A stretch of 64,000 bases of DNA from NCBI RefSeq assembly GCF_006345805.1, contig NW_021832120.1, positions 124,001 to 188,000 on the forward strand. Reading direction: 5' to 3'. The DNA comes from Octopus sinensis. Lineage: Eukaryota. The notes beneath the pieces were generated by a model. That model was not told the origin of the DNA. It saw nothing but the letters and a program-made list of their open reading frames with translations, and searched no databases. Positions 8,178 through 54,325 of the stretch are shown here, in pieces. Position 1 is the stretch's first letter; the number at the start of each line of letters is the position of its first letter. The position numbers were made by a program, and so were the translations under genes.

Positions 8178-9173
8178 ATGGGCAACTCTCTAACCGGACG
8201 AAATTACATATTTGACGAATACAAACAAAAAAAACTAGTCGGTGCATTAGAACGGGGCAGTATAGACACCGAGGACTTTTCTCTGGCCACAGCAGAAGCC
8301 AACAAAGTCCCCCCTCCCCACACTCTTAGTGCGGCCAAAAATCCTCAATAATAACCAAAAACCCAATAAACATCGACACTGGCCTGGAAATCAGCGACGA
8401 CACAGAACTGTTCCCCACAATGTTCAAATGGGAGGAAGGCGGGAATGAGGTCTACTTCGCCTGCAGTTATGACAACTGGAAGAAACACGAAATGATGAAA
8501 TGGTATACCACAGCATTACTCCAGTTATAATGACTTTTTTTGCATAGTGGATCTGCCCCACGGAGAACACGAGTACAAGTATGTGGTCAATGGGGTCTGG
8601 AGGGTCAATCAGAACGAGGTGGAGTGGTTGTTTATTTGTGTAGAAAACTATTCAAAGTCCTTTAAATACTCTTAATAATGTGATTTCAATATCCAGGGGG
8701 GACTTTGATGTGCATGAAGCACTTAAACAAGACTTTTTGGACAGAAAGAATGACACTACCCACCAGAAAGCAGTGGATTATTGTATTTATTTAATTATTT
8801 AAATATTATTAACTATTATATATAATTAATTATTTAATTAATTAGCTGAATATTATGAGGATGATGAAGGATTCTCTCAGGAGATACCTTTACGGTACAC
8901 ATTCGAGAAGAAAAAACCCCAATCCCTGCCTATCCACCTCATGCCTTGTGTTTTAAACGAAAATCTGCCCATAAATGTAAATTATATTAGCCATGGCAAG
9001 GTAGAACCCAACCTCCTGCCCGAGCCAAGCCATGCTGTGTTACAACACGTGTTTGTTTTGTCCATAAAAGTAGTCCTGGTGGTGTAATCTGCCAGAAAGG
9101 AGTCCTTGTGATGAGTGCCTCTCATCGCTATCGGAAAAAGTTTTTTACTACTCTGTTATATCGGCCTGCCTGA
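8178..9173 (+). CDS. PRKAB: AMP-activated protein kinase beta subunit
   Basis: N-terminal MG; glycogen-binding domain PTMFKWEEGGNEVYFACSYDNW...DLPHGEHEYKYVVNGVW; C-terminal domain LPIHLMPCVLN...EPNLLPEPSH...SHRYRKKFFTTLLYRP*. Introns 8307-8329, 8503-8524, 8619-8643, 8977-9000 and 9070-9095, plus one longer AT-rich intron. Confidence 0.93.
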
Positions 9174-9276
9174 GTTGTTCTAATAATAATACTTTTAACA
9201 TTTATTAATATATTTAAATTCTTTTTTAATTAAATATATTTTTATAATAAAATTATTGTCATTTCGTGTGACTGAT

Positions 9277-10254
9277 ATGGATGATGTTGAACAATCAGAA
9301 AATGAGAATATATGTGGTATTATCCATTTTATTATAAATTAAAGACCGAATTATAGTCAGTGGTGGTTTGGATAACAGAATAAGATTATTTAATAACTTC
9401 CCAAACTCAGTCAGATCACTCAATTTCTGGTCACACGTAAACGACGTGGAATTCAATCCAAAACAGGACATCCTGGCCGTGTCTGGACATGAGGTGGTCT
9501 TCCTCTACCACTACCCCTCCCTCCGAGAACTCTCCGGCACCAAACTGGGCTCTTCCAACGTCATTTCCATCAAATTCCGTCGTGACAACCTCACCATGTA
9601 CACTGCCTCAGACCAATTCCACAAAGCACTCAATTTGTGCGATATTTCCCGCCGTTTAGAACCCATCACGTCATTCGATTCGACCGCCATCCTATCCTGT
9701 CTGGACTACAGCCCCACCCTGGTTGGCCCCCACCTCCCCACTCCCAGGACACGTGCCTAACTGGGGACTTTTTAGGCCGGCTGATTATGTATGACTGGAG
9801 GTCCCCCACCAAGATAATCCTCCACTCTGTGCCTAATAATGTGTGTGCTATTTCTATGGTGGGGAACCAAGTGGTAGTAGGGAATAGTGCGGGCTATATA
9901 TATTCGTTTGATGTGAGGAAGTGTGATGAGTATGTGGGTCTGTTCTCGATGGGGAGGGGGTGTGTGTTGTCCTGTCGGGTGGGGGATCGGTTTGTGTTTG
10001 CCTCCTCGTCTGTGGGGAGGGTGGCTGTGTTGGATTCGAGGACATATGCTTGTTGTTATATGTTTGAGGATGAGTCGGCTAAGTATATAAGGGATTGTGT
10101 GCCTGTGTACGATGAATGTAGATTGGTTACTGCTAGTAATTCCTTTATTAAAATGTGGGATTGTACTACTTGTCGTGTTATTGATACGTGTAGTATCCAC
10201 ACTGAATCAGTCACCTGTCTTGCTTATCTCCCAAATGATCACGTCGATTTTTAA
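9277..10254 (+). CDS. MLST8: WD40 protein, LST8-like (TOR complex subunit)
   Basis: IIVSGGLDNRIRLF...SHVNDVEFNPKQDILAVSG...NVISIKFRRDNLTMYTAS parallels the LST8 N-terminal repeats. Introns 9317-9344 and 9722-9747. Confidence 0.65.
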
Positions 10255-10352
10255 TTTTTATATTTTATTATTTTTTTATTTAATTTAGTTTTATAACGAC
10301 TTTTAAAATTAGACAGAATTGACTTGATTCTTCTGTTTACTTTATTTTTATA

Positions 10353-12147
10353 CAGTTTACCCTCTATTGCTCGCCATTTCTATAACTCGCCACTTTTTTG
10401 GAAAAAATGCCATTTTTACTAAGGAAATTCCATTGCTCGCCAAATTCTTTTACTCGCCACGTTTTAGTATTAAAAAATTAAAATTTATTATTAAAAAAAA
10501 TAATTTTTCAAATATTTATACCGCGTGTTTTTTTTGTAACATGAGGAAGTGCTCAAGATTATGATCAAAAAAAAGAAATTATAAATTATCTTATTGTTAA
10601 TTCTTCTCTAAGTCTAAGGCGTGTTTCAGAAATTTTTTCGTCGCGTTTCAAAAAATCAATTTCGAGACGTGCAATTAACGATCTTAAATTGAACAAACAG
10701 AAGATTCTTGGAATTAATCCAATTTATAGGAGAAGTTCTCGTTTTTCGAAACTTAGATATTCAGCAATTGATTCTGAAATCATTGCCTGGATAGATTACA
10801 TGGAATCTATTGGAGTTTGCCTCAATGATGAGATAATTTTGTCGAAAGCAACTGAAATTGCTGCGTTAAACGGTCTCTTCGAATTTAAAGCCAGTAAAGG
10901 ATGGCTTGAAAAGTTCAAAAAAAGGCACAATGTAAAACTAAGAATTTTTCATGGTGAATTGGGATATACTGCGGATGAGTTCAAAGACCAAATCGAAGAC
11001 TTTAAAAAAATTATCTCTTCTAAAATAAATGAATATGGTTCAGAAAATGTTTATAATGCCGACGAAACCGGCGTATTTTACAAGACCATTCCATCAAAAA
11101 GTGTCTGCAGGAAACGCCGACCAGGACAAAAATTACTTAAAGATAGGTTTAACATTTTTAGCCAATTTGATGAATATTTACAATACCGGAATTCTTCAAA
11201 GGCTTGGATGAACATGGAAATATTTAACGAATGGCTGTATAACTGGAACAAGACTCTCAAACAAAAACAAAAAAAGATACTTTTGGTTGTAGACCATTGT
11301 CCTTCGCATAGAATAACAATCGAATTAAGTATGATAGAAGTTTTATATTTACCAAAAAACACGACTACTGTGCTTCAACCGATGGATCAAGGAATCATTA
11401 GATCATTCAAATCTCATTTCAACAAATTTAAATTTAAACATATAATTGAACAAATAAACTAAGGTGACGCAACTATTGAATGCTATAAAAAATTAACCCT
11501 GAAAGATGCAGTCTTATTTTCTTATCTAGCCTGGAAAGATGTGATACAATATCAAAATGTTTTCAGCACGCCAAATGGGAAAACAGAATTGAAGAACCTA
11601 TTATGGAAGACCATAAAATAAAAAATTTCGAACAAATTATAGAAAAATTAATGATCACAGATCCCATAAAAGAAGAGGAGTTTATAGACTTTACGTACTC
11701 TGAAAATGACGAACTTCATGAATTTGTTCAAAACAATAACTATGAAAATAACGATGAAAATGCAATTTTAGACAGTTCAATTACTGAAGATTGTGAAAGA
11801 AACAACTGTATTACACATCGAGATGCGATAAAATGTATTTCGGACCTCAAAAAATATTTTTCACATGACGATAATTTTGATGTGAATATGCTAGAAAGTT
11901 TATTAAAAATGCAAAAAAATATAGAGAAAAGATCATACAAAAAAACTATAAATGATTACTTTACTTAAAATTTTGGTTTTTTAAATAAATGTTTCGGCTA
12001 TTTATTTAAATGTTTAGATAGTTAAAAATTATAGAAATTTTTTGTTGATAGAAAATAGGATATTGATTATTTCTCTTACTCGCCAAATTCTCTTAGTCGC
12101 CAATTTTGGCTTGGTCCCAAAAATGGCGAGCAATAGAGGGAAGACTG
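10353..12147 (+). mobile_element. pogo/Tigger DNA transposon with frameshifted transposase
   Basis: TIRs CAGTTTACCCTCTATTGCTCGCCATTT / AAATGGCGAGCAATAGAGGGAAGACTG with TA TSD. CENP-B HTH (FKASKGWLEKFKKRH) and DDE_1 motifs (VYNADETG, LVVDHCPSH, LQPMDQGII). Confidence 0.95.
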
Positions 12148-12452: not shown

Positions 12453-14043
12453 ATGAATCAAGAAGGTTATTTTTGTTTTTATTTCCCAGTTCTTGGAAGA
12501 GGGTACTACATGTTCATTATTTTGGGGGGCTTCACGTTTATTTGTGCCTACACTCATCGTGTCAATCTAAGTCTAGTGATTGTCCAAGTAGTACAAACTG
12601 ACGATAAAAACATTTCTGGAAACGTGCTTGTTTTAATGACTAATTTCTAGTTTATTGTGAAATGGAATTCTCTCGAGCGGGGAATGGTCCAATCCTCGTT
12701 TTTTCTGGGATATTTTTTGATGCAGTTTACAGGGGGAATGCTAGTAGAAAAATACGGAGGAAAAATGTTGCTAACAATAACACTCTTCGTTTCATCTCTT
12801 CTAACCATTCTGTCTCCCACTGCACTTCTCAACTCTCCATATTCTCTCATCGCACTGAGACTCGCCATGGGGTTGTCTCAGGTCCCCAGTTGCGTCCTCA
12901 TGATAGGGATTCCTCATAACGTCCTTCCAGAAACTGACCGTCCACTGGGTCCCCCACCGACGACAGTCCACGGTGATCGGACTTATATTTTCCGGTATTT
13001 GACGTTGAGTGGACCACCAGGAGCTCAACTGGGGGTTGTGTTTGGATTCCTTCTGACCTCCGCCATTGCTCGACTGCCGAATTCGTGGTCATATTCATTT
13101 TATATTCTTGGTTTGATATTGTAATATTCAGGCTGTTTGGGCTTGGTTTTGGGGGCTGTTTGGCATGTGTGGATGGACAATTTCCCGGAGGACAACAAAT
13201 TTATTTCTGAGCGAGAAAAACGGTATATTGTTCAGAACTGCAAAGAACCAATAAAAATTAAGTTTTCGGTTTGAAATTGACTTTTATTTGTACAGCAAGT
13301 CCCACTAAAGTCAATATTTTTGTCCAAACATTGCATTGCTGTGTTTGCGAACGAATTCACTTCGATGTGGACCACATTCACCAATCTGACTATTTATCCC
13401 AAATATTTATACGCAAAATTCGGATTTCTTACAGAAAATGTGAAAATATGAGTTTTTTGTAGTTCTAGCAAATGTATGCGTCGACTATTCCGTATATTGC
13501 CATCATGCTTTCCATGTCGTTTGTGGGAATTGTTTCTGATTACGTAATCCACAAAAATTACATCAAAAAAATCAACGTTCGTCGGATTTGCATGTTTTTG
13601 GGTTTGTTTTTACGTTTTTTGAACAAAAGGGTCACTTCCGTGTTCTTTCATCTACCTTGCCACCACCTACCTCCCACGGGATGCCGGGAATTTCGCGGTG
13701 GTAATCTTCACCTTCGGGAGCTTCCTCATGGGCTTCCAAATCACGGTGTTGCACAACGTGGTGGACTTGAGTCCCCAGTTTTGTGCCACCATAATGGGAA
13801 TTGCCTCCTCCTTTGGCACATTTGGGGGGACCGTCGCCCCGTTTGTGAACGAAGTGATCACCACAGACCAGGTTGGTTGTTTATGACTGTTGGTAGTTTA
13901 ATGTATTCAATTGGAGGATTGTTTTTACTATTTCTGGGGTGATTGGGACTCTTTCTACTGTCGCGTTCATGCTTTGGGGGACCAGCACACGACAGTCCTG
14001 GGATTCGCTTCCCGCCAGTCGCACTGAGTCGACCATTCTATGA
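12453..14043 (+). CDS. SLC17A: SLC17-family MFS anion transporter (sialin/VGLUT-like)
   Basis: YTHRVNLSL, W...RGMVQSSFFLGY..MQFTGG.LVEKYGGK, HWVPP, DLSPQFCATIMGI, LWGTSTRQSWD. Several 20-30-nt introns. Confidence 0.88.
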
Positions 14044-14189: not shown

Positions 14190-15406
14190 ATGTTGGTTTT
14201 TGTTTTATGTGTGGCATTGGTTTTAATAACTACGATTTTATTATTATCCAAAAAAAAGAAAATCAATGGAAATGGAAAGAATATAATTGTATATATTTTC
14301 CTTTCTTATAAAGATTTCTGGCGGATCCAGCGGGATTGGTAAATCCTTGGCCTACGTGGCTGTCCGATCCGGATTCAACGTCCTTATTATTGCGAGAAAT
14401 AAAGTAATCCTCCACCATATCTCTTAGGAAAGACTTTTCTCTACAGCAAATGAGATTGAGAAATACGCCAGGAAACACAACAGTCAATCTGTTTTATCTA
14501 TATTCCAAAAAGTAGGTTGTTTGGGATATTTCTCTCGATTTAAACCAAGAATATTCAGAAATTGACTCAGCAATCGACAACTTTGTACAAGAACAGGTAA
14601 TAACATCAATAAATTCTAGAAAATAACAAAAATCGATATTTTATTTAATTGCGCGGGAAATTCGCATCCGGGAAACTTTGAAGTGCTGGACCAAAAGTGT
14701 TTTGAGGTGTTTTTCTGTCCTCATCAAAGGATCAAATGTCCTCAAATTTCCATTCGGCAGTCAAACTGACCAGAGCAGTCCTTCCTTACATGAAACGTGC
14801 TCTTTGTGGTAGAATCGTCTTTATTTCTTCCGTCGCTGGCCTTGTCGGTCTCCACGGTTTTACAGCCTATTCTGCGAGTAAGTTTGCATTGAGGGGATTC
14901 GCCGATGCCCTGTCGATGGAAGTACTATGGGTGTCTCAGAGGAGTAGGTCAAGCCTTTCAATGTTGGGGTCACCATTGCCTTCCCCCCTGACACGGATAC
15001 TGAGGGATATCGTACTGAAATGGAATTTAAGGTCTTTTCAGGGTGATCACGTGTAGTCTGAGGAATGTGTTGCCATTTCTGAAACCGCGGGGTTGTATTC
15101 GTCCGATACTGTGGCTGAGACTATTTTTGGGGACACCATGGTTGGTTTTTTGTTGGTTTTTGAGGGAGAAGGCTGGGAAGTATTTCAGTACTGTCGGATT
15201 TGATGGTTTTCTTGTGTCCAATTTGTGTGTTGGGATGTCTCGGTCTTCTTCTGTGCTTTCGACTGTGTTTCAAGTGAGTGGGTTGTTTGATTTGTTAGTT
15301 CATGTGCCTGGGGGTTGTACGTGTAGTAGGTCTGGGATATATTTACTATTTCGACAGAATAGTCAACTCCATTCATTTGCGACGCCAACGAGAGAATTTG
15401 GACTAG
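14190..15406 (+). CDS. KDSR: 3-ketodihydrosphingosine reductase (SDR)
   Basis: Hydrophobic N-terminus, [47 protein letters not shown], and a KDSR-like C-terminus GMSR...YYFDRIV...*. Confidence 0.88.
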
Positions 15407-15626
15407 TTTTTTATTTTCTTATTTGAAGGTTGTTTGTATGTTTCTATAGACGTTCTTCACTTCGTTATTTTTTGGAACTGTTCTAATTTTATTACAACAA
15501 AAATCCAGTTTAATCGCTAGCTTAACATCGATTGACTTGGCTAATTTTATTAGATATTAAATAGTTATATTAAGAATAATATTATTTGGGGACTGTCTCT
15601 AATATTTTTGCCGTATTCCACACATC

Positions 15627-16879
15627 ATGACCAGTTTTAAATATAGGATAAGTCCTCGTTTTTTGACATTCTTGAGGTGTTCTTCCGACTTTTATGTATT
15701 GGTTATCAACATAAATTGTTATTAGATATTTGCGGCTTTCGATTTAGGATCAACTTCAAGTGACTACTCATTTTTAAACTTACAGGGCCAGAAAGACCAA
15801 TTCAGAAGTTATTTTTAATGAGATTTTTAAAATTTTTAAATTAAAGTTTGAAAGTGGTCCAAATAAGGTTGTATATTTATTATTTCAAAATGAATTTAAA
15901 CTTAAGTATTTTTTAATGGAAAACCATAAATGAGATAAAATAATTTGATTTGTGTTAATTATATGAATTTAATTTTTTGGTTCAACGTTACAATTTTCTT
16001 TTCCTCCGTAATATTTATAGTTTGGAAAATAAAATATCAATTAATAGATTCTAGGAATAGCTACAATCTTCGGAACAGTGATTTATGTCTATAAATTCAG
16101 TAACCTCAAATCAGTCGAAAATACATATATTTGGTACGTGGTCCCCATCTCCATATCTTGTGTTTTCGCATTCATTTTTATTATATCTCCTGTTTTTGGC
16201 TTTTGGGCAACGATTAAAGGGGACAAACTGTCACTAATACTAGTTTTAAATTCATAATTTAAACTAGTTTTTAATCGGACTCGTTTTTTCCATTCTCATC
16301 TCAACTGCCACAATAATATATTTCGGATGTTTTCATCGTCAGTTCAACAAGGGCATGCACAATGGTTTAACTAACTTGATGACTCACTACACGTCCAACA
16401 AGATCCTAGTTGACACAATCCAGCAATATGTTTACAATTTTACTTCATTCCACTTCAGTTTAAATGTTGTGGAGCTGTCAATTATTCAACTGAGTACCCC
16501 ACTGGAGTGCCCTCTTCATGCTGCGTATACAAACTTAGTAATTCCTGTTCGGTGTTCTACCGGGTTAGTTATTATTGGTTTACTCGAGACTTGTACTGAT
16601 GTATTTTATTATTACATTCAAACGTATTGGGTCATAGTGTTGGTGGCCTGTGGAATAATCAGCTTTATATTTGTATTTATGATGTAGTGAGTTGTTTAGA
16701 TGTGTAATTTTGTGATTATTGTCATGCTGGTTAGGAAGTGCAATGTTTCCAGTTCTCCGATTATTCGGTCTGTGAAAGATGAACCTTCCCAATTTTCGAC
16801 AATTGGGATCACTAATCTTAACACTGATGTTTTGAAGGAAATACTAAAAGTTCTGAGAGCTAGAATAAATCGAGAGTAA
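15627..16879 (+). CDS. tetraspanin
   Basis: DTIQQ|FKCCGAVNY...GVPSSCC large-loop motifs and flanking hydrophobic segments; multi-exon. Ends approximate. Confidence 0.8.
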
Positions 16880-17901: not shown

Positions 17902-19185
17902 TAGTAAAACCTCTCAAATCCACCGTTTCTTGAATCCGCCTGTTTCTTGAATCCGCTTTACTTAATTGTTAACTAAATTAATTATTATTTAAATTACACG
18001 CCACATTGTTTTCTTGAGATGCGTCGTTGTACTAGACTTTATATCAACGAAAAATTTTTTATTCTTCGTTATATTTCTGAAAACCCGTCAATGTGTGCTC
18101 CACAAATTTTAAGAATTTTTTCTGTTAGACTGAAAAAGGCGATTTCTCCGAGAGCAATAAACGATTTTAAGTCAAAACTTGACCCATTAAACAGGACTGA
18201 TATAAAAACATTCAACGCTACAAGAATTCCTAAACTCAAGTTTAATGAAATTTATGAGAAACTGGTAGCGTGGATTAATTTAGTGGAGTCAAAGGGAGCA
18301 ATTTTATCTCATTCAATAATCATTTCAAAGGCTTTTAAATTTGGAGAAAATAATGAAGCATTTAAAGCAAGCCGTGGATGGCTAGAAAAGTCCAAAACTT
18401 GAAATGGCCTTAAGCTAAGAAAACATCACGGCGATATGGGATCAATTAATCATAATGAAAAATCCATTACTGATTTCAACGACATAATCAGTTTAAAAAT
18501 TCACCAATATGGATTGGATAACGTCTATAATGCTGATAAAACCGGTGTTTTTTAAAAGGCAATTCCTTCGAAAAGTGTATGTACAAAATCAAGACCTGGA
18601 ATAAAGTTGTCGAATGATCGATTTTCATTTTTATGTGCAAATTGTTCCGGTGAGGATAAAAGAATGCCTTTGATGATAGGAAGATTCAAGAATTAATTAG
18701 AAATGTGAAATCAATTATGCAATTTTTTATGATGGATTTCTAGAATATTGCTATTTTGAAAATGAAGAACTAATTGAATTTTTGGAAGGGCAATCTCGAG
18801 AAGATGAAAAACCTTAACCAGTATTTGATTTTATTTAGTGACTAAAATTATGAAACAAGTAATGAGAAGGATTATGTTGAAAAAAAAGTTGAGCTATCGG
18901 AAGCTTTCAGAGCACTAGAGACCATTAAAACTTACATTTCTCAAATCAAAAATTCAGATAATGATCACGAAAATATTATTAAAATTGGCGAATTGCTTAG
19001 AAAATCAAATTAAAAAATAAAATTTATGATTTCTTTGAAAAAAAATTATTATATTATTTATATAAATGGAATTCTAAAGATTGTATAGATTTTAAAGATT
19101 GTAACTTGCAATTAGAATGGATTATTTAAAATTTAAATTGTCTCTCGAATCTACCAATTTTCTACCCGGTCCCAAAATCGGTAGT
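17902..19185 (+). mobile_element. decayed pogo/Tigger element (same family as 56525-57776)
   Basis: Left end tagtaaaacctctc; gaatccgc repeats; ORF 18019-18402 with FKASRGWLEK; VYNADKTG. Right end ccggtcccaaaatcggtag is truncated. Confidence 0.85.
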
Positions 19186-21452: not shown

Positions 21453-22056
21453 GTGTCACACAAGATTAATTATAGTTATATTTTTCCGACCAAAAATTAA
21501 ATAATTTATTTGAAAGGTTAACCAAGATAATTTTAAAGATAATAGCTTTAATTTAATAATTAATATTAAATAGTTTCTGGACACTTGATTCTAAATATTT
21601 TATAAACTTTAATCAGCAGAAATTTTGTATTTAACTTGACAAACTTCGGGACATCTAGAAGACCTCTGAAAAACTTTAAGCTAACTTGGATCGGCTCAAC
21701 GCTTGGCTAATAGATAAGCGTCTCCTTGTGCAAAGTCCTCTACGTCCCCTTTTATATTTGATAAAAGATTGGGAAGAAAGACTGTCGTTTTGAAGCTGAA
21801 CAAAGTGGCCATACATTTTAAAAATGTCACACAATTTTAAAAGTGAATCTCAATATGCATCTCTTTTCAAATGTAGACAACACACTTTGAAATGCAAAAA
21901 ATGCAATGTTTTGAAAAGCTTATTGGAAATATGAAAGATGGGTTGTTTTGTCATTACCGAACTCTTTATAATTAAATAAATAAAAATCAAGAACTTTAAT
22001 GAAAAAAATCACCCCAAAATCAAAAATCCGAGAGAATGAAGAACCAATCTAACCAA

Positions 22057-23285
22057 TCATCGAGAGTCGGCGAATCCCACTCGATTATGTTCGAAATCAA
22101 AAACAGTGTAATAACGACGGATGAAAACGTCCCCAAATATCCATAACGGTGAGTCCATTCCATTAATCTTTATCAAACACATTTTAATTGACGGAATCTA
22201 TCAAATTGACAAATAAGTGAAACAACGGGCATAACGTAATCTTCCGGGTTCAACTCAAACATTCTCCCGCCCATATTTATCTTGATAGAAGGAAATCTTC
22301 TAAGCGACAGTCCTTCCACTATAGGCTAAGAATAAATAATCCAAATAAACCATATTTTCTACGATTTGTACTCCCAAAATCTTATGAATTTTGTTAACTT
22401 GGTCGTGAGGACCGATAAGAAAACTGGTCCCCGTATCCGCAATAGCTTCAACGCGGTCAAACGTGACATTAGATAATGAAATACTGTAAATATGATAATA
22501 AAGTCAACCTCTGGACATGAAACTGCCAATACAACTGTTTGCTGACTGGGATATAAGTAATTTCCCCGGTGTAGTGCTTGTCGTCAATGTAGCCAATTGT
22601 TAATTCTCCTCCAATGTTATCATCAGGATCTCTATCATTTATTATAAGCACGTGACTTTGATAAGTAGAATGCAAAAATCGGCTTTTTTATAACTCCTTG
22701 TTTGACCATCTTCTGGATTGGAGGTTCTACATTGTCTTCTGCAATAGAGGGATATGCCAATCCAAATATTCCGTCAAAAGTAGCATCATCAAATGAAAAA
22801 AACGTTTCATTGATTTCTCCAAAAACTTGTCCCTCCACGCGTAGATCTTTCACAGTTAAAACATCTTGGCTGAGATTTCTAGCTACTTTTCCGGATCCAT
22901 ATTCAATTTTAAGGACGCTCCCGTCCTTCTTGTAAGTCGATGACTTTTCGGACACGTATGTGTTGTGTTCTAAATAAATTTACGAAAATGTACCTGGGAA
23001 TTTGTTTCCAGAAAGAACCCACAAATTCGAAGAACCAGTATCAAATATTACGTTAAATTGGCTGTCCAGGTGTCCCGAGAAATATTTCTCCAGAGTAATA
23101 TGCCTGTTGGCTTAAATGAAATATTATGCTTTAGAATAGTTGTGTAGAGCAATGCTAGTTCCTGTGGTCTGAATCCGGTTTGTGTCTTTTAAGTCTGCTT
23201 GGATATGACATGAAGATAGTTTTTTGATTTGTTCAACCCTGATACTTATTTGACATAATTATGCCTGTATTCTGGACTAGACATT
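22057..23285 (-). CDS. pepsin-family aspartic protease (cathepsin D/E-like), with one apparent frameshift
   Basis: [76 protein letters not shown]. An extra base lies between GTPGQ and FNVIFD (about 23060). Start uncertain. Confidence 0.85.
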
Positions 23286-38596: not shown

Positions 38597-39195
38597 ATGC
38601 ATAATGCAATTCGGGTTCTTGTGAGGACGACTCGAACAAATAACCTCCAATTGTTCAGGCAATACAACGATTCCAAACACATTGAACACAACTCTGGACT
38701 ACACGTGACAATAATCAACCAAACCGACAGCAAATATATTTTTGTGGACGCAATTACAAAATATGGCTTCAGACTCTCCACAGGCATCCACGTCTGTGGT
38801 CCCTGCGTCATATTCCCTAAGCACATATTCCACTGGAACGTCTGCTCCCCCTCAGACGTCAAAACCACCAAACTTTCCCTCTTTCAGTGCATTTTCCCGC
38901 GCCCAGGTGCCCAATATGACTTATCAGAGATGTCCTGTTGGTAGGACTGCCTGAGATATGTCAACAGGAAGTGTCCAGACAAGTACAAAGGCTGGGAATC
39001 AATTTTGAGGTCCTTTCACCTGTATTTGTTGAGTTCACGTGACCGTAGGAGAATGCAGTGAGTGCTTTCAACTTTATGAATTCTGAGAGGAGATTTGTAG
39101 CCTGTGCTGTGATTCCGCCTGATCTGGATGCTGTGTCTGTTGAGGACATTAAAGCGATCTCGAATATTAAAAAAATTGGTGATTTTGATGATTGA
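38597..39195 (+). CDS. NDUFAF3: complex I assembly factor NDUFAF3 (Mth938-like)
   Basis: FVDAITKYGFRLSTGIHVCGPCVIFPKHIFHWNV...PRP|DVLLVG...LGINFEVLSP|ENAVSAFNFMNSERRFVACAVIPP. Intron 38907-38929 plus one more. Confidence 0.88.
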
Positions 39196-40820: not shown

Positions 40821-42817
40821 ATGAAGAACAAGACAGACATTTTTCTGGAATTATGTTATAAAAGCCTCGAGCAGTACGATGGGCACATCAGCGAGGGGGC
40901 ATACATAGAGGAGTATTTAAACCACAACAAAGTAAAATACATACAACAATATTGATAGGTCAAAGACAACCAAATCAGACAAAAAGTCGCAGGAATATTT
41001 TTCGGCTGTCAAAAATTCACAAAAATTCTCCGAAACTATTTGGAGGGGTACTCCCAGTGGAACACAATAAGGAAGACTGAGTACCACTACTACATCGGTT
41101 GGACCCCCCTCAGCACTCAGTCCTCTCCTACCTGATCCTTGTCGGAATTGGGGTATACGACATTGAGGAAATAAAAAACATACTTCTTACACAGACACCC
41201 CTCAAAATCAGAAGGGTATGCACTATTTTTATAATTGTAGTTCCTGGATTATTTTCTTAATGAAAATCGAATGAAAATTCACGTGGATGACTGGAATTGT
41301 ATTTATGATGCAGATTTTATATCAAAAAACATCACAAAAAATATTAGCAAGTATGTCATATGTATATATATCTGACATCTCCCAGTCATTTCGGCCATCA
41401 ACCAGTCCCTCATGTCATCCCCCCAAAATGTCGAGAAAGTCAGAGAGACCAGGAAAATCGTTCAAAAACCTTTTCAACTGACAAAACCCGGGACCCCCAA
41501 AATTAGAATCCCCTGTCCTGTACTAATCGGTCTTTATTTGCCAGGTTTTTGACAAAAATGAGAGTGAAAACACAAAAAAAGTAAAAACCATTCCTTTGAA
41601 GGAGCGCCCAAAAAATACCGGGGACCGAAATCAGATGGAGCCATCCAAAAATGGAGAACTTGTCAACCAAAAATCACGGTCAGAAAAACCCAGATTTCCA
41701 CGGGCATGTTTCAAAATGTAAAAAAATTAGAAAAAACATAAAATCAAAAAAGTGTCAATTCACACTCGGATTTCCCTCAATTTGCCCAAAAAACAAGAAA
41801 TTGACCCAAATCCACCTCAAAAGAAAACTTCGACAGTTCCCCAGGAGATCAAAGCGACCGCCACCTCACTCCTTAGGGAGGCTCAGCTTTACGAAAAACT
41901 CCGTGAATCAGAAATTCAACGGTTTTTACGATTTTTTTAGTACAGAATCACGGATTTGGCTAACGGAAATGGCGATTCTACGGAATTCTACAAATTTGTC
42001 AACTCAGAAGAGGCAAGAATGGCTGAGCTCGAACTCAAAAAACGGAACCAAGTCCGTGAGGATGTCCTCAAAGGGAAAATCCGAGCAAATAAAGCAGTGG
42101 AAGAATATTTATTAGAAAACGAGAAAATTGGACTCAAAGTCATACATGAAGTTTGTTTTGTGTCTAAAAAAGTAGAAAAAACGCATAAAAAATGAAATTT
42201 GTTCAAATTTTGTACAAAAAATGGACAGAGCCAAGTTTTTTTGGGAATTTTATTTAAGTTTGATCAAAGCGGAGAGTGAGAGAGTGAAGGACAACATTAA
42301 AAAGTCAAAAGAACAACTCGAAATAAAAAACCGACAAAAAAGTTTATTTAAATTCCTTCCAAATTTACTAGAACTTGAAGATAAGCGGGAATTTGAAATA
42401 AAGAACAAAGAAGCCGCAAAAAATGTGAAAAATTTTTTTAACGTGCAGGAAGCCGAAGAATTGGACAAAAAACAAAAACTAATCGCGGAAATAAAACTCC
42501 AAGACTCCCTGACTGCACTCAAAATAAAGTCGGGTGTCCACGACCTTACGGAAACCGGGGGACATGGACTGTTGGTGGAGATGTCAGTCACGGAGGTTAT
42601 TTCTATGTGGCCTACTCAGTTGAGGGAACGGTTATTTCTTGCTAAGGAAGAGAGACAGGCCAGTCTAGTAGAGAAGGGGGTTCAATTAAGGGACAGGAGG
42701 ATGGTTGGGGGTGTTATGTTTATAGACAAGGCTGAGAGGAGGGTGATGGACGAGAAGCTACAACTCATTAACAGATATAGACAGATGATCGCATCGACTG
42801 GAAATAGAAAATTTTAG
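40821..42817 (+). CDS. CFAP99: cilia- and flagella-associated protein 99-like
   Basis: N-terminus ...GCQKFTKIL...YYIVLSYL...FLDYFLNE...WNCIYD; KPFQLTKP; SLLREAQL; GDSTEF; GHGLLVEMSVTE|LRERLFLAKE; coiled coils. Confidence 0.75.
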
Positions 42818-42919: not shown

Positions 42920-43886
42920 ATGGTGATGTGGTGTATCGATTACTTACATGGATATCTATCAAGAAATCACTCTTTATTCTCTATAATGGAAGATCCGTGG
43001 AATTCAATGATGAAAAATTACTCCCTCTTTCAAGTGACAGTAATCGGATCCCTTCTAATCCACGAGGTACCCCTAAATCTAACCCCAGATCCTATATTTT
43101 GTCGGATGTCTTCCATATTTCCTCTTCCAATTCATTCCCTATATGCAAAAATATAAAATCCAAGCAGTAAATAACTCTAATAAATCCTAGAACGTGAAAG
43201 AAACATTTCCGAAACAATTAAAATGTATAAAACTATTACTAATATCCCATTTCCTAATCCAACTGCCCCTAATCGCTGGAATATATCCCTACATCATCCT
43301 CTTCAACATCCCCACGGACTGGGAGAGTATGCCCACATGGACTGATCTGACTGGGCGGGTAATTGTGGCGGCTGTGGTGGAGGACACCTGGCACTTTATG
43401 TTCCACTATATATTCCACCAAGTAGTGCCTCTGTATAAATACATCCACAAAATCCACCACTATTTCCAAGTATAGTCCCCATAGGAGTGTAGAGCCCGTT
43501 CAGTCTGGCGGCGGAATATGCCCACCCAGTGGAGACTGTAGGTAGGTGATGAGGTGATTGGCAGTGTTGGGGTTGGGGACGTTTTTTGGGACTTTAATGT
43601 TTGGGAATCATTTGGTGTTTGTGTGGGTGTGGACGATGGCTCGGATGTTGGAGGCGATTGATGTGCATTCAGGGTATGACTTTCCTTATTTGAATCCGCT
43701 TAATGTGCTGCCTTTTTATGCTGGTTGGGTTGTGGTGTGATTGAAGGGGTGCGGTTTCATGATTTTCATCATTTTAATTTTGTGGGGAATTATGCTTCTA
43801 CGTTTGTGTGGTGGGATTGGCTTTTTGGGACTGATAAGCACTATAGGGAATATCAGAGAAGGTTAAAGAAGGATAGACTGGATTAA
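42920..43886 (+). CDS. MSMO1: methylsterol monooxygenase (C-4 sterol methyl oxidase)
   Basis: His boxes [57 protein letters not shown]. Confidence 0.9.
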
Positions 43887-44765: not shown

Positions 44766-44820
44766 TATTAATTTAGTAATTTTGATTTTATTAATTAATT
44801 AGAGGTAGTATTGATTGTCA

Positions 44821-45633
44821 TCAGTTTTTGCCTGGACCCGGCATCTCCTTGGACCGCCCTAAAAATCAACTAATTTAACCCTAAAATGCTGCTGATAACC
44901 CTAAATCTAACCCCAACACATATACATTCTAATAATAGCCCTAACACCCAAAAAAAATCTTAATCTCAACTAACAAAATTTCAACCCTAACCCTAAACAT
45001 TTTCTCCTTAACCCTAAACATTTTAACCTTAAACAAAATTTTAACCCCAACACTAAAATCCTAATTTAAGTTAAAGTTATGTTTTCTTATTAGTAATAAA
45101 AAGTAAAAATTACAATTTTTTTACCCTAGATCTGTGTACATTTTTAATTAGTTCTCCTTTTAATAGTGTATAATTCTGTTCTTTTTTTTCAACAATCCAA
45201 AACGTTTCAGACAACGTTATCATAAAGAGGATATTTTCTGGTTGATACATTTGTATCAAAGTCAGGTTTAATATCACCTGATCATCGATATTTATTTCCT
45301 CTTCATCGAATTTCCACCTTCTTTTTCTCTTCATATTTTCTCCAGCTTTTTCTATGTTCTCTAACACTTCTTTTCTCATTTCTCTGATATTTTGAGTTCT
45401 GTTTTCATGTATGAAATTATCATTTTCTTCTGCATTTTCTCCTCCCTCGAAAGCAATCATGGAATCTATTTCTGTTTCTAATATGGCTTCGTTTTTTATT
45501 ATTCCCATAAAAACATTGAATGGAATATTTTTCTTTAAATATGTATTTATGACTGTTAATAAACTATTTTCTATATTTTTTATTTGAAAATACGCTTGCG
45601 GTCCCAGCAGATGCCGGGTCCAGGCAAAAACCG
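44821..45633 (-). mobile_element. TIR-bounded element with integrase C-terminal fragment and telomere-like repeats
   Basis: Perfect 23-bp inverted repeat gtttttgcctggacccggcatct (44824-44846 / 45609-45631, extendable to about 34 bp). Scattered TAACCC at 44875-45055. Minus ORF ...VINTYLKKNIPFNVFMG...ENIEKAGENMK resembles integrase C-termini. Confidence 0.65.
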
Positions 45634-45806
45634 GTGAAATTGATTGTTCTCTGTTAAACTTATTATAGGAGTAGGAGTGCACCACTAGATACCCCACGTG
45701 GATAACGGAAGGGGGTAAATTTGGTTAACCAATTATTATATTACAAAATTAAATATTATAATATAAAAATAAATTTAATTGATTATTTATAACTAAACAA
45801 TTACAA

Positions 45807-47091
45807 ATGCAGTGTTGTGATGCACTATATGATATCTATAAAATTGAAGTCATTAAATTTAACTCTCACCACAGGAACTCAGTGTTGTGTTGATATATAT
45901 AGACTGATGGACCTTATTCCCGGAGAGTTCATCATTAAAACCTTTCACAACGTCGAGAACCTTAAAGGATATCCCGGGTCATGTGGTTCGCCACCATAAA
46001 ATATTTCAGGAACATTAATCGTCACAAATTTAAGAATTATATGGAAATCTACAAATAAAAAATTGTTTCTTTACTTTTGTAAGTATTTTAATAATAAAAG
46101 ATATTGGCTTTGGGGTATTCACTCGCCTTTTCGTCAAGTCCTCTGTCTCAGTAGGTTCCTGATTATTTAATTTAGAAAATGTATGGAAACGTCGAAGCCC
46201 TCTGGATATATGCTTGTTATTTAAAAAACAAATATGAGTTTTTATTTTATTACAAAGTAGTAATAAATATTATTTTTAGAGTGGCGAACCCTCAAAACTT
46301 TATAGCACTGTTATCTCAGTCTATCGGTAACAAAATGTGAGTTTTTAACTAACAACAGGGCCTACGAATGTTCTAGACTGTTCCGACAAATAAAATCTCG
46401 TGGAATATTTTCCCATGGAAACTATCTAAATGTCCTCCCAGGAGAACAATTCCAACGCAGTTATGACGGGGTAGCTAGTCTGTCCTCAGATAAAGTAACA
46501 TTCAATCAAACTAATCTCTAAAGGGCTCACTGGGGACTCTACACTTGACTAATATTCGACTTGTATGGATTGGAATGTTTGATGAAATGCACAACATCAG
46601 TATTTCTTACTTCCACATGGTCAGTTGGTCTAGTGGTATAACTAGTGTTATCCTATCCGTTTGGTGGACTCGAAGTACGGGAAAGCCTTAGTTCTGCGTA
46701 CTTCGTCGGAGGTGGATTTATATATTATAAGGGAGTAGGCTAAGCATTCCAATTATGGATTTCAGCCAAGTACGGCAAATGAGCCGAAAATGATGGCTGA
46801 GCATATAAATGGATTGTTGGATAAATATAGACGGAATCCTATTTTTGGGGTCAATGTGGACAAAGGGGGTGACTCAGAGGAAGGGAAGGAGGAGGTTGGT
46901 TTGTCTAAAAGGGAAGAAGAGGTGGAGGAATATTCTGATGTTATTGGGGTTGTTTTGGTTAGGTTTTTTAGGCGTATTTGTCGGCGAAAACTAATGAGAG
47001 GTCGGAGATTGTGTTTTCTGAGACTTATCAGCTTGCATTTGAAAAACCTGTCGATGGATATACAATCGAGGACTTGTGGAATGTCCTCTAA
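45807..47091 (+). CDS. BBS5: Bardet-Biedl syndrome 5 protein
   Basis: PGEFIIKTFHNVENLKG, GTLIVTNLRIIW, RAYECSRLFR, LSSDK|GSLGTLHLTNIRLVW, DSKYGKALV, NPIFGV, LAFEKPVDGYTIEDLWNVL*. Start uncertain (45807 or 45907). Confidence 0.93.
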
Positions 47092-49434: not shown

Positions 49435-50496
49435 ATGGTGTTACACAATGTAGCCCCACCTATACACGAATCATTACAAAACACACGACTAAACTTGCTC
49501 AATCTATGGACAAATGGTCACCTAACCATCCCCGAAATGTACAAGAGTGTGACTTACGTAATAAACCAGAAAGACAATCGATATTCCCTCAGCAGACTGT
49601 CGGCTATTTTTAGCCTGACTGTTATTTTGATATTTCTAAGAGTCATTTCCTACAGTCGACTGGCAGTAAATGTCTTGATTGCTCAAACTTAGACATTTCT
49701 GTCCAAAAGATTCCAAATTCCAAAACCTGCGTCTAAAAAAATGGCAGAAAATTTAATAAAAATGTTTATCATGTTCTTGCCCTTCCCATTTCTCACTTTT
49801 ATTCTCTTTAAGAAAGAAAACTTTGTCTTTCTGTACGACCCACTTACAGCAGTCTCAGGTAGTTTGATTTTCTAGCGTAGATTTCCCGGTCAGGCTACAC
49901 TCCGTAGACCTCTCAATTTCTTGCCTATATATAGCCCGTATTTCAATATGTCTAAGTTCGTGCTTTACTGGCTTGGTGTATGAGACACTTCGATCGGATT
50001 ATTACTTACTAATACTACACCATATATGTACGGGGACTTTGTTGTATGTGTCGGACGTGACAAGGTTGGTACCCCGACTTAGCGTAGGTCACAACCTGTG
50101 GGTCTGGTGGTACTTTTTCTCCACGATTCCACGGATATTTTGCTCTGTCTGGTCAAGACGTGTTTGTACTTGACCAAACTAGAATCCAGATATAGGAAAT
50201 ACTGGTGTTGTGTGTCGAATGTTCTGAATTTAGTATTTGTTACTGTTTGGTATGTTTTTTGGTTATTTTTGAGGTTTTTGTTTCGAAATTTGTTCTTTCC
50301 GAGATTTATTTTGAATTTGTGTGTTGTTCCTGTGATATATAAGTGGCCTATTCCTTACACTGTGTTTGGATACACGGAATTGGGGTTCCTCACTGCTCTG
50401 GCATGTATGCACGTGTATTGGCTTGTGGTGGGTGAGGGGTTAATATGGTAGATGATTCTTAAGGGGATAATTAACAGGCTGGATCCGAGGGAATGA
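49435..50496 (+). CDS. CERS: ceramide synthase (TLC/Lag1 domain, no homeobox seen)
   Basis: Lag1 motif RSDYYLLILHHICTGTL...GLVVLFLHDSTDILL..VKTCLY; C-terminal DPRE*. Confidence 0.88.
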
Positions 50497-50587: not shown

Positions 50588-53213
50588 ATGTTGGAAGGGA
50601 CACCTCATTTTAACTATGAGTCGGTTATTGCCGCATTAAATGTTACTTATGGGACTGAATTTAACGAGGAAATGCAAATGAAGGCCTCCGAATACCTCAC
50701 TCTCTTCCAAAAGTCACAAAACGCCTGGGAACTATGTGGACAAATCCTCTGGTCCTCCTCCATGTCCTCTCACAGAGCATTCGCTGCAAATACAATCCGT
50801 AGTAAAGTACTCCTCAGTCCTAATCCCCCAGATAAACTACGACTATAGTGAACTATCCCCCTCGAGTTATAAAGTATTAAAGTTCTAGAACATTCTAGAA
50901 CATTCTATCCTTTCTATTGGAACAATTGTGGCTGTATAGAGAAGACAGTGTGACGACAATTCGGACTGAGCTTATTCTGGGAATAGTCCAGTTGGTGATA
51001 CGAGGGAATGACTGGGAGTGGGTGTTTGATAAGTTCCTGGAGGTGTATTCTCAAAACACGTGGATTGTCCTCACCTTCCTCAGAGAATGTGCTCTCTCTG
51101 TCAAAAGGGGGTCACCCTTCGCTGCCTTCCTGTCCTCCAAGGAGACTGTCCTTCTTCACTACGTGGCCTTGGGGATGGACAGAGAACTTGGATGGAGATG
51201 TGTGACGTCATTACTCAAGAGTGACGTCATCAAGAATGTCCCTATCCTTATTCCTCCTCTTTTTGGTGTTCTCAGACAAAGGCCAATCCACAGCACAGTC
51301 GTCCAGGCTTTGGGTGCCCTGGCTGTATATTGTAAGAAAAATGGCGGGCTTTGGGAGCAGATTGTTCCATATATATTGGAACTTCCCGCCTTGATGGGTG
51401 AGAAAGAGACAGACGAGGCACTGTCGGATATAATTTCTGACTTTGGGTCGTGTATGGTGAAGGATCCCTCAGTGGAGAAGGTTTTGGGGGTCGAACTGGG
51501 TCTCCTCTCATCCCCCCACTCCCGGGTGGTCTTCAATGGACTGTACTTCTGGACTACACTCGTGTTGGAGGAGGGTGACCGATGTGTGCCCCACATCACC
51601 CCTCTTGTCCTCTCTATGGTCAATATATGTCGACATGTGTGGACTCCCAACACAACTGAGGATATCAGGAAGGAGGTGGAGGACTGTCTTTCTTATCTTT
51701 TGCCTGCTCATTTAGGCAGAATTAATAATGTGGTATTTTCCCGCCTTTATTTATTGATTTTTGGAGTGATGGAAGGTGGGGAAGGTGATGTGGTGGACTC
51801 CTGCCTATATTTGCTCAGTAGAGTGAATGGGAAGGGGTATTGGTATATATAACACATGTAGTACATCACCTGAGGACACAAATTATATTCTACAATATAT
51901 TTCCCGCCAAAACATAATGGCGCGAAGTTTGAAGTTATTGGGAGTGATATCACATTCATTCACGTGTCAGCACATTGACTATATAATGGAGTATATAAAG
52001 GCAGTGATTGGTGACCCTGCCTTGTGTGAGGATGCCTCCTCTGCCTATTGGGGACTGTGTTCGAACTGCCCTCCTGAACTGATGGTCCCCCACCACCTGC
52101 CCCTGCTGAGACTGTCCCTGAGAAGTGAGTGCAGTAAGGCAGTGATAGCCAGCATTGTCTTCTCAATATCGAATCTGCCAGTGGATATGTTCAGTGTGTA
52201 TTTCTGTGGAGTGTGTGTGCATATAAGAGACGACTTTGTGGCCCAACTGCCCCCTACGAGTGGAGTACTGACATGCTTCCTCACCCACATAGCCACTGCC
52301 TACAAGTCAGTGAGTGTGGGGGCACATCAGTCCCCTCAGGCCTTTGGGGAGATCTGGCCTGTGCTGGCACAAATGTTCGACCAGACCATTGGAGAAGAGC
52401 AGTTGGCCGAGCTGTATGTGCGGTGTCTCAGGCATATAATAAGACAGACAGTCCTGCCTATTCACATAATCAACACATTGGTGGAAAGAGTAGTGTGTTG
52501 TGGTCAGTCTAGATTGAGTGTTTATATCCTATATATAAGCATACATGTTTTGTATATTTGGGGGGGATTATAATTGAGCAATATGGGAGGGAGGAGGCAT
52601 TCCAGTTGAGTCGGTTGTTGGCTGTGCTTGTCCTGCCCAGTCTGAGTGTGTTGAGGGACACCAATGGGGTGGTTAATAACCCGGACTATGCCAAGGACTT
52701 TTTCCAGATGATGTCGAGGTATGTGAGGGGATTGACAGGCAGACTAGTGGTGGCCAATCCACAGTCCTACGTGGAGTACTCTGCCCCTGTTCTCGACTGT
52801 GCTCTCTCTGCCCTGTTCTCTCACAATAGGGATGTGTATGCTGATGCCTGTTCATTTCTGTGTCTGGTTGTGGGGGGGAATGGACTGAGTATTCTACGGG
52901 CAGTGCTCACCTCCTTTACTGGATGTGTCACTCATTTGTCGTCGGTGGTGAAGGTGGTGGTGGCTGTGAATAGACGTGACCCGCAGGTGGGTGGTGTGTT
53001 TATGGTAGGCATTTCCGGGTATTCTGAGGGTTGTTTTGTCGGAGATGCCGCGGAGTGGGGATTGTGTGAGGGGAGTGCTTTCTGATGGGGAAATGAGCAC
53101 TTTCTATGACTCGGTCACTGCGTACTGCCCATGTCTTCATTCATAGGGGAGTCACCAGTCCTAAACTCGTGAGGACTGCATTTAATAAATTCAAGTCTAA
53201 TTTTATTGTGTGA
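50588..53213 (+). CDS. TNPO3: transportin-3 / Mtr10-like importin-beta family protein
   Basis: IBN_N region KASEYLTLFQKSQNAW...FAANTIRSK|INYDYSELS; HEAT-like helices; NNPDYAKDFFQMMSRY. Last intron 53122-53146; stop at 53211-53213. Confidence 0.82.
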
Positions 53214-53214
53214 T

Positions 53215-54325
53215 TTATTGCTGATAATTGTTCATATTGGTATACCATCTGCTAATTTTGGTGTGTTTGAGGGCATCATCAAAGGCAGTAGTCCCCTCTA
53301 TACTCCTCAGCAGGCCAAAGACAGTCTACATATTAGTCCCTCTCTACTATATCGGCCAAGTCAGGCTGATCCCCTCCCATGTACTGCCCTCCACCTACCG
53401 CCTCCACCCACAGATTGAGTGCCTTGTACAACGCCTCTCTGCTATCCCCTGTTATGTCATATCTACATGACCCGTCACATATACCTGCGGGCGATCAACT
53501 TGCCGAGGATATAAAACATGAGTCCTCCCGCGTATATATATATCTGTCGTTGGACATAGCCGTACATGGTAGGCCACTCCCCCACCCGGTCATACACGCG
53601 CATAGTCCGGACTGCCTCTGTGTATGTCCGGTATATGTTGGGGGAGAATGTGTGGAGGAGTACACTGTCTGCCCACTCCCTCCATTCCCGCTCTTTCCTG
53701 ACAAATATTGGGAGTATTAGACCGGGTTGTGAGGGGGTCGAAGGGGACATGTGGGCCGTAGATTATGTTATATTTGTGGGGGTGTTCGGCCTCCTTCCCC
53801 TGTCCTTTGATGTGGGGGTAATATTGGCATATTTCCGCCATACTTTCCCGCCCTCGAATTAAGTAGCTTTCAAGGCAACTTAATATTTGAGAGGAATCGT
53901 TTATTTGCTAAATTAAATTATATTAATTATAATTTATATTTAAATTAATAAAATATACAGATAACTCTCCGTTTTGTTCGATGGTGAGGATGGGCACTTT
54001 TTTATAGACCGACCACTTTATTTGTTTCCGCATAAAAAAATCAACGTGAACCAAGTCGTAGGAAATGCCACGGACATTCAGGTAAGTCCTCACCTTACTG
54101 CAAAACGGGCAGGACTGGTATTGATAAAGAGTTATCTTCAAATTCGAATTATCTCCAGGAAATTTGATTTTCTGGACATTTTTAGTTTATTACCTTTGTG
54201 TATAACTCTGGAGAGTCTGAGGTGGTGTAGGACAGAGTGTATGCAATCGGAAGGGACACGAGAAGTGCTTTTTTGAATGTGGGTTTTATTAATGTGCAGG
54301 ATAGTGACTTTAGACTTTTCAACAT
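53215..54325 (-). CDS. PTGES2: prostaglandin E synthase 2 (glutaredoxin/GST fold)
   Basis: ITLYQYQSCPFCSKVRTYL...YKKVPIL; C-terminus AFDDALKHTKISRWY..*. Confidence 0.9.

Follow-up and report, generated by a model that had tools for sequence, protein, structure and literature searches.

Opposite compositional skews at the two ends of genes have been described in most unicellular fungi, in which the coding strand has an excess of C at the 5' end and of G at the 3' end (McLean & Tirosh 2011, PMC3315797). The fungal skew includes fourfold-degenerate sites, amino-acid usage, and untranslated regions (UTRs), is strongest in the promoter and 5' UTR, and was attributed to transcription-phase-specific mutation or selection, with both left open (PMC3315797). 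Among animals, the short introns of Drosophila carry skews linked to germline expression (Bergman et al. 2018, PMC5786239). Here, we analyzed a 64-kb stretch of DNA (positions 124,001 to 188,000 of contig NW_021832120.1, filed under Octopus sinensis; hereafter, the window), in which the sense strand of small host genes changes from C/A-rich to G/T-rich along the gene. A preliminary description of the window knew of no account of gene-centred flips of this strength; the view that none had been described is wrong, since opposite 5' and 3' GC skews are on record in fungi (McLean & Tirosh 2011, PMC3315797). The skew of the window is an extreme animal version of the kind already described there, with the same sign.

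Several other systems bear on the pattern. In vertebrate mitochondrial DNA, deamination gradients make the strand that is left single-stranded G/T-rich. The known transcription asymmetries of animal genes have one sign along the gene and amount to a few percent of skew; for mammalian genes, such a transcription-associated strand asymmetry is said to have been reported by Green et al. in 2003, Touchon et al. in 2003, and Polak and Arndt in 2008. A C-over-G skew just past the start sites of plant, fungal, and invertebrate genes was reportedly seen by Tatarinova in 2003, Aerts in 2004, and Fujimori in 2005. The C-over-G skew downstream of start sites is also summarised in PMC3315797.

Keto skew of the host genes

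The skew was expressed as the keto skew K=(G+T-A-C)/N, taken on the sense strand for genes. In 200-bp windows, for which the standard deviation (SD) of K for independent, identically distributed letters is 0.07, K reaches +0.51 (at 9901), +0.45 (43601), and +0.43 (50201) on one side and -0.31 (8201) and -0.32 (41601) on the other. A 3-state hidden Markov model (HMM) on the keto/amino letters called 20 skewed blocks with 6,517 bases, and the same model called 0, 0, 0, 0, and 102 bases on five mononucleotide shuffles. C makes up 10-16% and A 15-18% of the strongest blocks (9840-10194, 15021-15493, 43529-43829, 50203-50466, and 52478-53090). The skew is real and beyond chance. An upward switch of the cumulative sum (CUSUM) was found in 9 of the 10 genes (block-permutation p<0.05), at p<0.0005 in five of these. 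The change from CA-rich to GT-rich sequence within genes that was put forward in the preliminary description is confirmed.

The results on genes concern 12 curated host genes in this one window, which were rebuilt from peptide anchors chosen by family knowledge and then checked by Pfam, PDB, and orthologs; base composition was never used in choosing introns. The 58 curated introns have a median length of 25 nt, and 56 of them measure 21-29 nt; the two outliers, 8783-8845 (63 nt) and 53908-53958 (51 nt), are near-pure A+T. The earlier gene identities hold by Pfam for AMPK-beta, SLC17, NDUFAF3, MSMO1, CerS, TNPO3, and the PTGES2-like gene and by 6emk_B for LST8, which is the only protein that the WD40 protein of the window aligns with end to end. 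Additionally identified were a KDSR-like reductase, BBS5, a tetraspanin, and a cathepsin-D-type aspartic protease. The genes are as follows:

8178..9173, plus strand: AMPK-beta, 6 exons (Pfam AMPK1_CBM, 2.6e-23; AMPKBI, 5e-20; both domains spanned from end to end); CA-rich 5' zone in the HMM block 7976-8420 (K -0.28); switch at 8420 (CUSUM p=0.0065); intron 8307 C-rich, intron 8619 G/T-rich.
9277..10254, plus strand: LST8-like WD40 protein, 3 exons (yeast LST8 6emk_B end to end, E=5e-8; Pfam WD40); CA-rich zone ~9400-9839, GT block 9840-10194 (A.18, C.10, G.35, T.36); switch at 9839 (CUSUM p<0.0005); silent-site K from -0.6 to +0.8.
12453..14013, plus strand: SLC17-type MFS transporter, 9 exons, 3' end incomplete (Pfam MFS_1 5-347/347, E=7e-39); skew heterogeneous, GT blocks 13030-13176 and 13871-13980; single switch not significant, silent sites over-dispersed (p=0.0045).
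14190..15406, plus strand: KDSR-like gene (3-ketodihydrosphingosine reductase), 10 exons (330-aa model covering 99% of mollusc/amphioxus KDSR, E=8e-80); switch at ~14796 (CUSUM p<0.0005); GT block 15021-15493 with three G/T-rich introns.
15963..16879, plus strand: tetraspanin, 4 exons (Pfam Tetraspanin 2-222/225); GT-rich 3' block 16546-16774; silent-site thirds -0.12/+0.07/+0.33.
22057..23111, minus strand: aspartic protease (cathepsin-D-type), 5' end undefined, stop codon located (Pfam Asp 8e-81, 13-312/315); 3' end G/T-rich in sense, appearing on the plus strand as the CA block 21974-22147 (CUSUM p=0.02).
38597..39195, plus strand: NDUFAF3, 3 exons (Pfam DUF498 1-109/109, E=3e-19); switch at ~38873 (CUSUM p<0.0005).
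42986..43886, plus strand: MSMO1-type sterol methyl oxidase, 6 exons (Pfam FA_hydroxylase 2-132/132); CA-rich zone ~43050-43330; switch at 43528 (CUSUM p<0.0005); GT block 43529-43829 (K +0.51).
45820..47091, plus strand: BBS5, 9 exons, C-terminal exon located (Pfam BBL5 15-334/334, E=5e-68); GT-rich 3' block 46842-47020, containing the intron 46949-46971.
49537..50451, plus strand: CerS-like (ceramide synthase) TLC-domain gene, 4 exons (Pfam TLC 1-194/198, E=6e-13, only after frame correction); GT block 50203-50466 (K +0.45; CUSUM p<0.0005).
50588..52980, plus strand: TNPO3, 5 exons, C-terminus undefined (Pfam TPR_TNPO3_IPO13_4th); GT block 52478-53090.
53215..54171, minus strand: PTGES2-like gene, 5' exon undefined (Pfam GST_N_3, Glutaredoxin, GST_C_2); switch at 53619 (CUSUM p=0.02).

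TNPO3 and the PTGES2-like gene are convergent (52980-53218), with coding ends at most ~230 nt apart given the incomplete C-terminus of TNPO3, and their G/T-rich 3' zones point toward one another from opposite strands.

To compare site classes, the transcribed span of each of the 12 genes was divided into thirds on the sense strand. At fourfold sites, K changes from -0.17 over +0.01 to +0.31, with a rise in 11 of 12 genes (Wilcoxon p=0.003), and the GC skew from -0.26 over +0.04 to +0.29. Third codon positions behave in the same way (K -0.11/+0.05/+0.32) and rise in all 12 genes (p=0.0005), and K at codon positions 1 and 2 is +0.01/+0.01/+0.10. The interiors of the introns show K of -0.10/+0.08/+0.50, a GC skew of -0.63/-0.03/+0.58, and a T/A skew of +0.07/+0.14/+0.45; G makes up 5% of the intron interior in the first third, and C 7% in the last. 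Silent sites and introns are thus skewed several-fold beyond codon positions 1 and 2, so neither amino-acid content nor codon choice explains the pattern; against codon choice, the preliminary description had already argued from the introns.

The claim that introns obey the local skew also stands. The four introns quoted for it (8307, 9722, 8619, and 46949) are all real and needed to join homology-supported frames, and over the 58 introns, interior K correlates with the K of the flanking exons (r=0.72, p=2e-10) and more closely with that of the flanking third positions (r=0.77). The slope of intron on exon K, calculated for the first 47 introns, is 1.7, so the introns are more extreme than the exons. 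Among the uncurated further host-gene candidates, the GC skew rises in seven of eight.

The switch points given earlier were recovered within ~30 nt for LST8 (9839, against 9835), MSMO1 (43528, against 43500), and the PTGES2-like gene (53619, against 53620), but those of NDUFAF3 (38873, against 38935) and CerS (50202, against 49930) were ~60 nt and ~270 nt off, respectively. As to the repeated cycles ascribed to AMPK-beta, SLC17, and TNPO3, silent-site K is over-dispersed at about 2x the binomial variance in SLC17 and TNPO3 (p=0.002-0.005), but no period could be demonstrated; AMPK-beta has a single early switch at 8420, and TNPO3 a single late one at 52477. The minus-strand PTGES2 gene had been offered as further evidence because it shows the same order. 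Since a CA-to-GT change is its own reverse complement, this is a mathematical identity that carries no information, and PTGES2 cannot separate strand-independent from transcript-oriented processes.

Anatomy along the transcription unit

Silent sites are unskewed in the first 100 nt after the ATG, reach a trough at 100-199 nt from it (K -0.30, GC skew -0.51), cross zero in K at ~400-450 nt, and peak at 100-199 nt before the stop codon (K +0.54, GC skew +0.60). Taken over all sites, K lies at +0.2 to +0.34 from 320 to 80 nt before the stop, is lower over the final 80 nt of the coding sequence (CDS), takes the values +0.27 and +0.11 within the first 80 nt after the stop, and is 0 beyond. The upstream flanks have a K of ~0 on average, and those of AMPK-beta, CerS, and NDUFAF3 are individually CA- or A-rich. 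The skew is a property of the transcription unit, with C exceeding G at ~100-300 nt after the ATG and G exceeding C and T exceeding A at ~100-400 nt before the stop. With transcript ends placed by stop codons and nearby AATAAA-like motifs, and with start sites unmapped, the skew appears confined to transcribed DNA, introns included. Candidate AATAAA-like motifs, which were noticed by reading and are unscored, lie 10-125 nt past several stops.

The flip itself is a gradient over 150-250 nt rather than a step. TNPO3 is the only long gene (2.4 kb); it has a CA trough at 100-350 nt from the ATG, a sign change at ~350-400 nt, a long weak plateau near +0.15, and then a peak over the last ~450 nt. 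From this one long gene, the two lobes look anchored to the gene ends. In genes of ~1 kb, the 5'-anchored and the 3'-anchored regimes abut, which looks like a flip at the gene centre.

The skew had been reported as missing from transposable elements, and we likewise saw no comparable 5'-to-3' rise in the open reading frames (ORFs) of three pogo copies and four elements resembling long interspersed nuclear elements (LINEs). Transposon ORFs are either unskewed or skewed evenly throughout. One LINE at 28.9-31.9 kb serves as an internal control: its sense GC skew is uniform at -0.28, with C over G and no 5'-to-3' change. No gradient was found in 200-bp windows of the spacers. The pogo/Tigger-like transposase copies lie at 10328-11968, 17977-18693, and 56805-57494, the first beginning ~75 nt past the LST8 stop; the four non-long-terminal-repeat (non-LTR) remnants, all with broken frames, lie at 28700-31900 (plus strand) and at 32502-35351, 58160-59632, and 61752-64000 (minus strand).

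A C-type lectin-like gene at 26109-28368 (minus strand; 31% G+C; modelled without a Pfam check) has many exons and AT-rich tiny introns. Unlike its neighbours, it shows only a faint rise in skew; it may be silent in the germ line, or young.

Transition axis and effect on proteins

Along the gene, T endings increase from 0.51 to 0.72 of NNY codons (p=9e-9), and G endings from 0.31 to 0.60 of NNR codons (p=3e-11). The purine content of fourfold sites is near constant (0.47-0.51). The gradient lies on the transition axis. As the NNY and NNR shifts move G+C in opposite directions, a gradient of GC content or an ordinary codon bias is ruled out. The G+C content of fourfold sites (GC4) goes up slightly within 0.48-0.56, and the introns, at 0.25-0.35, are barely GC-richer than the background of 0.25.

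Inside genes, the GC and T/A skews vary together (r=0.45 over all sites, 0.65 over silent sites); outside genes, they do not (r=-0.05). The T/A skew of silent sites increases along the gene (r=0.53, p=4e-7) and reaches +0.3 to +0.45, with T over A. The GC skew truly reverses its sign, and the T/A skew goes from ~0 to strongly positive; of the two lobes, the GT-rich one on the 3' side is stronger than the CA-rich one on the 5' side. An exact mirror symmetry of the lobes was considered and holds for G/C but fails for A/T, as T is at least equal to A nearly everywhere at silent sites.

Proteins are affected as well. The keto score of KDSR residues, after subtraction of that of 120 orthologs, increases along the protein (r=0.14, p=0.01), and the orthologs alone have no positional trend (r=-0.03). 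Judged against its orthologs, the composition of the KDSR protein is dragged by the skew.

Gene models, further features, and probable source

A dynamic programme that maximised open frame with GT..AG introns was rejected, as it introduced too many introns and settled on wrong frames precisely where the sequence is skewed. Because several frames of both strands become free of stop codons in skewed stretches, a naive spliced-ORF search misread the frame in the 3' parts of SLC17, KDSR, and CerS. Spurious long ORFs or hidden 25-nt introns occur in the skewed stretches 9772-10200 (minus strand; here, an antisense ORF of 142 aa), 13469-13939, and 15043-15426. The annotation of this genome is at risk of systematic 3'-end errors through lost stops and invisible 25-nt introns.

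The window has 35% G+C overall and consists of GC-richer small genes among AT-rich spacers (~25% G+C), along with pogo-type transposons and non-LTR retrotransposons. Two ORF chains, 39369-40570 and 40820-42817, are multi-exon and uncurated and have no Pfam match; the latter is strongly enriched in lysine and, for most of its extent, CA/A-rich. A 212-bp stretch at 44853-45064, directly 3' of a minus-strand ORF (45110-45697), contains 2% G and degenerate telomere-like units (ccctaa / aaccctaa), and may be the relic of an interstitial telomeric repeat.

Introns this short have been reported among animals for Dicyema japonicum and myxobolid myxozoans only (PMC13644364); the myxobolid introns, of about 22-27 nt, evolved independently. 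For the genome of D. japonicum, the published figures are 36.7% G+C, 49% repeats, and a coding length that averages 1,155 bp (PMC6736024). In a protein search, the best matches of the KDSR protein were distant orthologs of at most 46% identity, led by molluscs and amphioxus, with molluscs and other invertebrates at 44-46%; searches with LST8 and the large TNPO3 exon gave no matches, and neither did a lookup for identical proteins. Intron size, GC content, repeats, and the spiralian best matches together make a dicyemid, such as D. japonicum, the likely source of the window, and a myxobolid myxozoan a less likely one. A literature search of incomplete coverage returned no report of skew in dicyemids or myxozoans, and PMC6736024 and PMC13644364 are silent on it.

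Possible origins of the skew

We propose with moderate confidence that the cause is a strand-specific bias in transitions that is linked to transcription and that shifts its target from one strand to the other along the gene. Toward the 3' end, the non-template (sense) strand would gather A->G and C->T changes, which are those expected from deaminated amino bases of an exposed single strand and which agree in sign with the transcription-associated asymmetry known from animal genes. Within a few hundred bases of the promoter, such changes would mainly hit the template strand. What is observed is the anatomy of the skew, the kinds of sites that respond, its transition axis, and its confinement to genes; that the force is mutational rather than selective, and which strand would be exposed, where, and by what, we infer from them. 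Gene confinement, the strongest response at the least constrained sites, the transition axis, the coupling of GC and T/A skews, the drag on proteins, the end-anchoring in TNPO3, and the existence of a precedent all speak for a strand-switching transition bias, on which we are about evenly divided. More tentatively, and with rather more doubt than belief, we suggest a deamination-like process (mainly A->G) in a probably dicyemid nuclear genome that is tied to transcription, as strong as the asymmetry caused by replication in vertebrate mitochondrial DNA, and strand-switching, and that adds to the GC islands while dragging the proteins. The G+C excess of fourfold sites over the background would then stem from T->C changes in the 5' part of the gene and A->G changes in the 3' part.

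Several points weigh against a mutational cause. The strongest effect at silent sites is predicted by both mutation bias and selection on nucleic acids. The final ~120 silent sites of MSMO1 (~350 nt) are 85%, 95%, 90%, and 100% G/T in successive 30-site windows; such values are far above the known transcription-associated skews of nuclear DNA and would need a rate asymmetry of at least 10-fold. We know of no mechanism by which the template strand would be exposed just over the initial few hundred bases of a gene. The dip in the last 80 nt of the CDS, together with the unskewed first 100 nt and presumed 5' UTR, is not obviously predicted by a process that simply follows RNA polymerase; neither the extreme amplitude nor the dips at both CDS ends are obviously mutational. 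In addition, the end-anchoring comes from one long gene, and the sample comprises 12 genes in one window.

A serious rival, though we doubt that it is correct, is selection on the nascent or mature RNA, which sequence alone cannot separate from mutation bias. Here, the transcript or its transcription would be under selection, through avoidance of C (and A) toward the 3' end that paces the polymerase, as in the adaptive hypothesis that McLean & Tirosh put forward (PMC3315797), through control of R-loops, or through a pre-mRNA that is not self-complementary near the ultra-short introns. In the R-loop form, to which we give the same doubtful standing, C-rich RNA near the start would disfavour hybrids, and G-rich RNA near the end would favour them for termination. 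The extreme amplitude, the stop of the skew near the message end, and introns that are nearly G-free in the first third and nearly C-free in the last fit such selection, and an adaptive reading was weighed by the authors of the fungal precedent (PMC3315797). The MSMO1 pre-mRNA does have weaker local structure than its shuffles (z=+3.9), but in 11 of the 12 genes, local structure is not reduced (mean z=+0.25), and neither global stability nor long-range pairing exceeds that of shuffles preserving local composition. Amino-acid usage is pulled off the ortholog consensus, which looks more like a cost than a benefit, and the AT-rich lectin-like gene (26.1-28.4 kb) works with the same tiny introns and without the skew.

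Three specific forms of RNA-level explanation were set aside. The fold-back of 5' and 3' mRNA halves, which the preliminary description had offered, is unsupported: when five mRNAs were compared with 30-nt block shuffles, the minimum free energy (MFE) gave z of -2.3 to +0.02, and pairing over long range was no more frequent than in the shuffles. Unstructured RNA is no general cause, as 80-nt local folding energies equal those of shuffles in 11 of 12 genes. Avoidance of cryptic splice sites seems unlikely to produce the pattern, since a rough dinucleotide estimate gives more GT..AG pairs in the G/T-rich zones, not fewer.

Mutagenesis by recombination appears improbable. A recombination hotspot had been among the options listed earlier; placed in the gene centre, with deaminated resected tails, it would predict the opposite sign from strand geometry. 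Breaks in both AT-rich flanking spacers, whose resected 3' tails would be deaminated to leave CA to the right and GT to the left of a break, would by the same geometry give the correct sign; the zones of a few hundred bases match resection lengths, and the pattern is orientation-blind, as predicted. The maximum should then lie beside the break, but the skew peaks 100-300 nt inside the CDS and dips at both ends. Moreover, no mirrored CA block lies 3' of LST8, KDSR, tetraspanin, or BBS5, and no GT block lies before AMPK-beta; as the introns are barely GC-enriched, the islands are also unlike those of regional biased gene conversion.

It is very improbable that each gene harbours a replication origin, or another centre of bidirectional DNA synthesis, with a G/T excess on the leading strand. 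This earlier suggestion has the sign right, for the jump goes in the direction seen at bacterial origins and human skew jumps, and the GC and T/A skews both rise. The confinement to genes and the off-centre flip in TNPO3 speak against it: the skew is kept to transcription units of ~1 kb and gone ~80 nt past the stop, whereas fork skew should cross intergenic DNA; one origin per gene would require termini in spacers as short as ~100 nt; spacers and transposons have no gradient; and the change is a gradient over 150-250 nt instead of a step. Finally, a by-product of protein composition or codon bias, such as T-rich transmembrane segments toward the C-termini, may account for part of the short-range fluctuation in SLC17, one of several membrane proteins among the genes (with CerS, MSMO1, and tetraspanin), but is refuted as the main cause by a shift of +0.09 at codon positions 1 and 2 against +0.4 to +0.6 at silent sites, by introns that follow and exceed the exons, by the skew of the soluble proteins LST8, NDUFAF3, BBS5, and KDSR, and by orthologs without a positional trend.

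The main uncertainty lies between mutation and selection, for a sample of one window. If the skew is mutational, the genes record strand vulnerability in early versus late transcription at single-gene resolution, and the amplitude found here allows this to be studied gene by gene instead of in genome-wide averages alone. If strand-switching deamination is correct, the window would represent a natural system in which the exposed strand of early and late transcription is written in the sequence. A force at the nucleic-acid level reshapes proteins in what is probably a fast-evolving parasite lineage, which bears on the long-branch problems of such taxa.

Comparison with known systems

The jump of the GC and T/A skews has the direction of the replication jumps at bacterial origins and human N-domains. 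Those jumps extend over 100 kb to Mb, whereas the present one covers 1 kb, is confined to genes, and occurs once per gene. As in the start-site C skew, C prevails on the sense strand toward the 5' end; however, that skew is narrow and located at the start site and 5' UTR, while the lobe found here is intragenic, measures a few hundred bases, and spans introns. The asymmetry associated with transcription in animals shares with the present skew its extent over transcribed DNA including introns, a sense G+T excess, and an excess of A->G over T->C, and fits the 3' two-thirds of these genes. In contrast to that asymmetry, the GC skew here has the opposite sign over the first third of the gene, and the G/T content of silent sites gets as high as 70-100%.

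With vertebrate mitochondrial DNA, the skew has in common the amino-to-keto axis, a comparable silent-site amplitude, the positional gradient, and the drag on proteins. The mitochondrial gradients are organellar, replication-driven, and genome-wide, whereas the skew of the window is nuclear, arises per gene, and flips within 1 kb.

Compared with the fungi, the host is an animal with 25-nt introns, and the skew differs in several respects. The T/A skew rises from ~0 to +0.3 to +0.45, whereas the fungal A/T skew is flat with A over T; the trough lies 100-300 nt inside the CDS with upstream values that average ~0, apparently instead of a minimum in the promoter and 5' UTR; fourfold sites are skewed several-fold above codon positions 1 and 2, and introns more, whereas fungal fourfold sites are skewed no more than positions 1 and 2; and 9 of 10 genes change significantly, against 33% in Candida albicans, and do so at a far larger amplitude than in fungi. 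Both share a C-biased 5' end, a G-biased 3' end, and intermediate values between the two, and in both, fourfold sites and amino-acid usage are affected.

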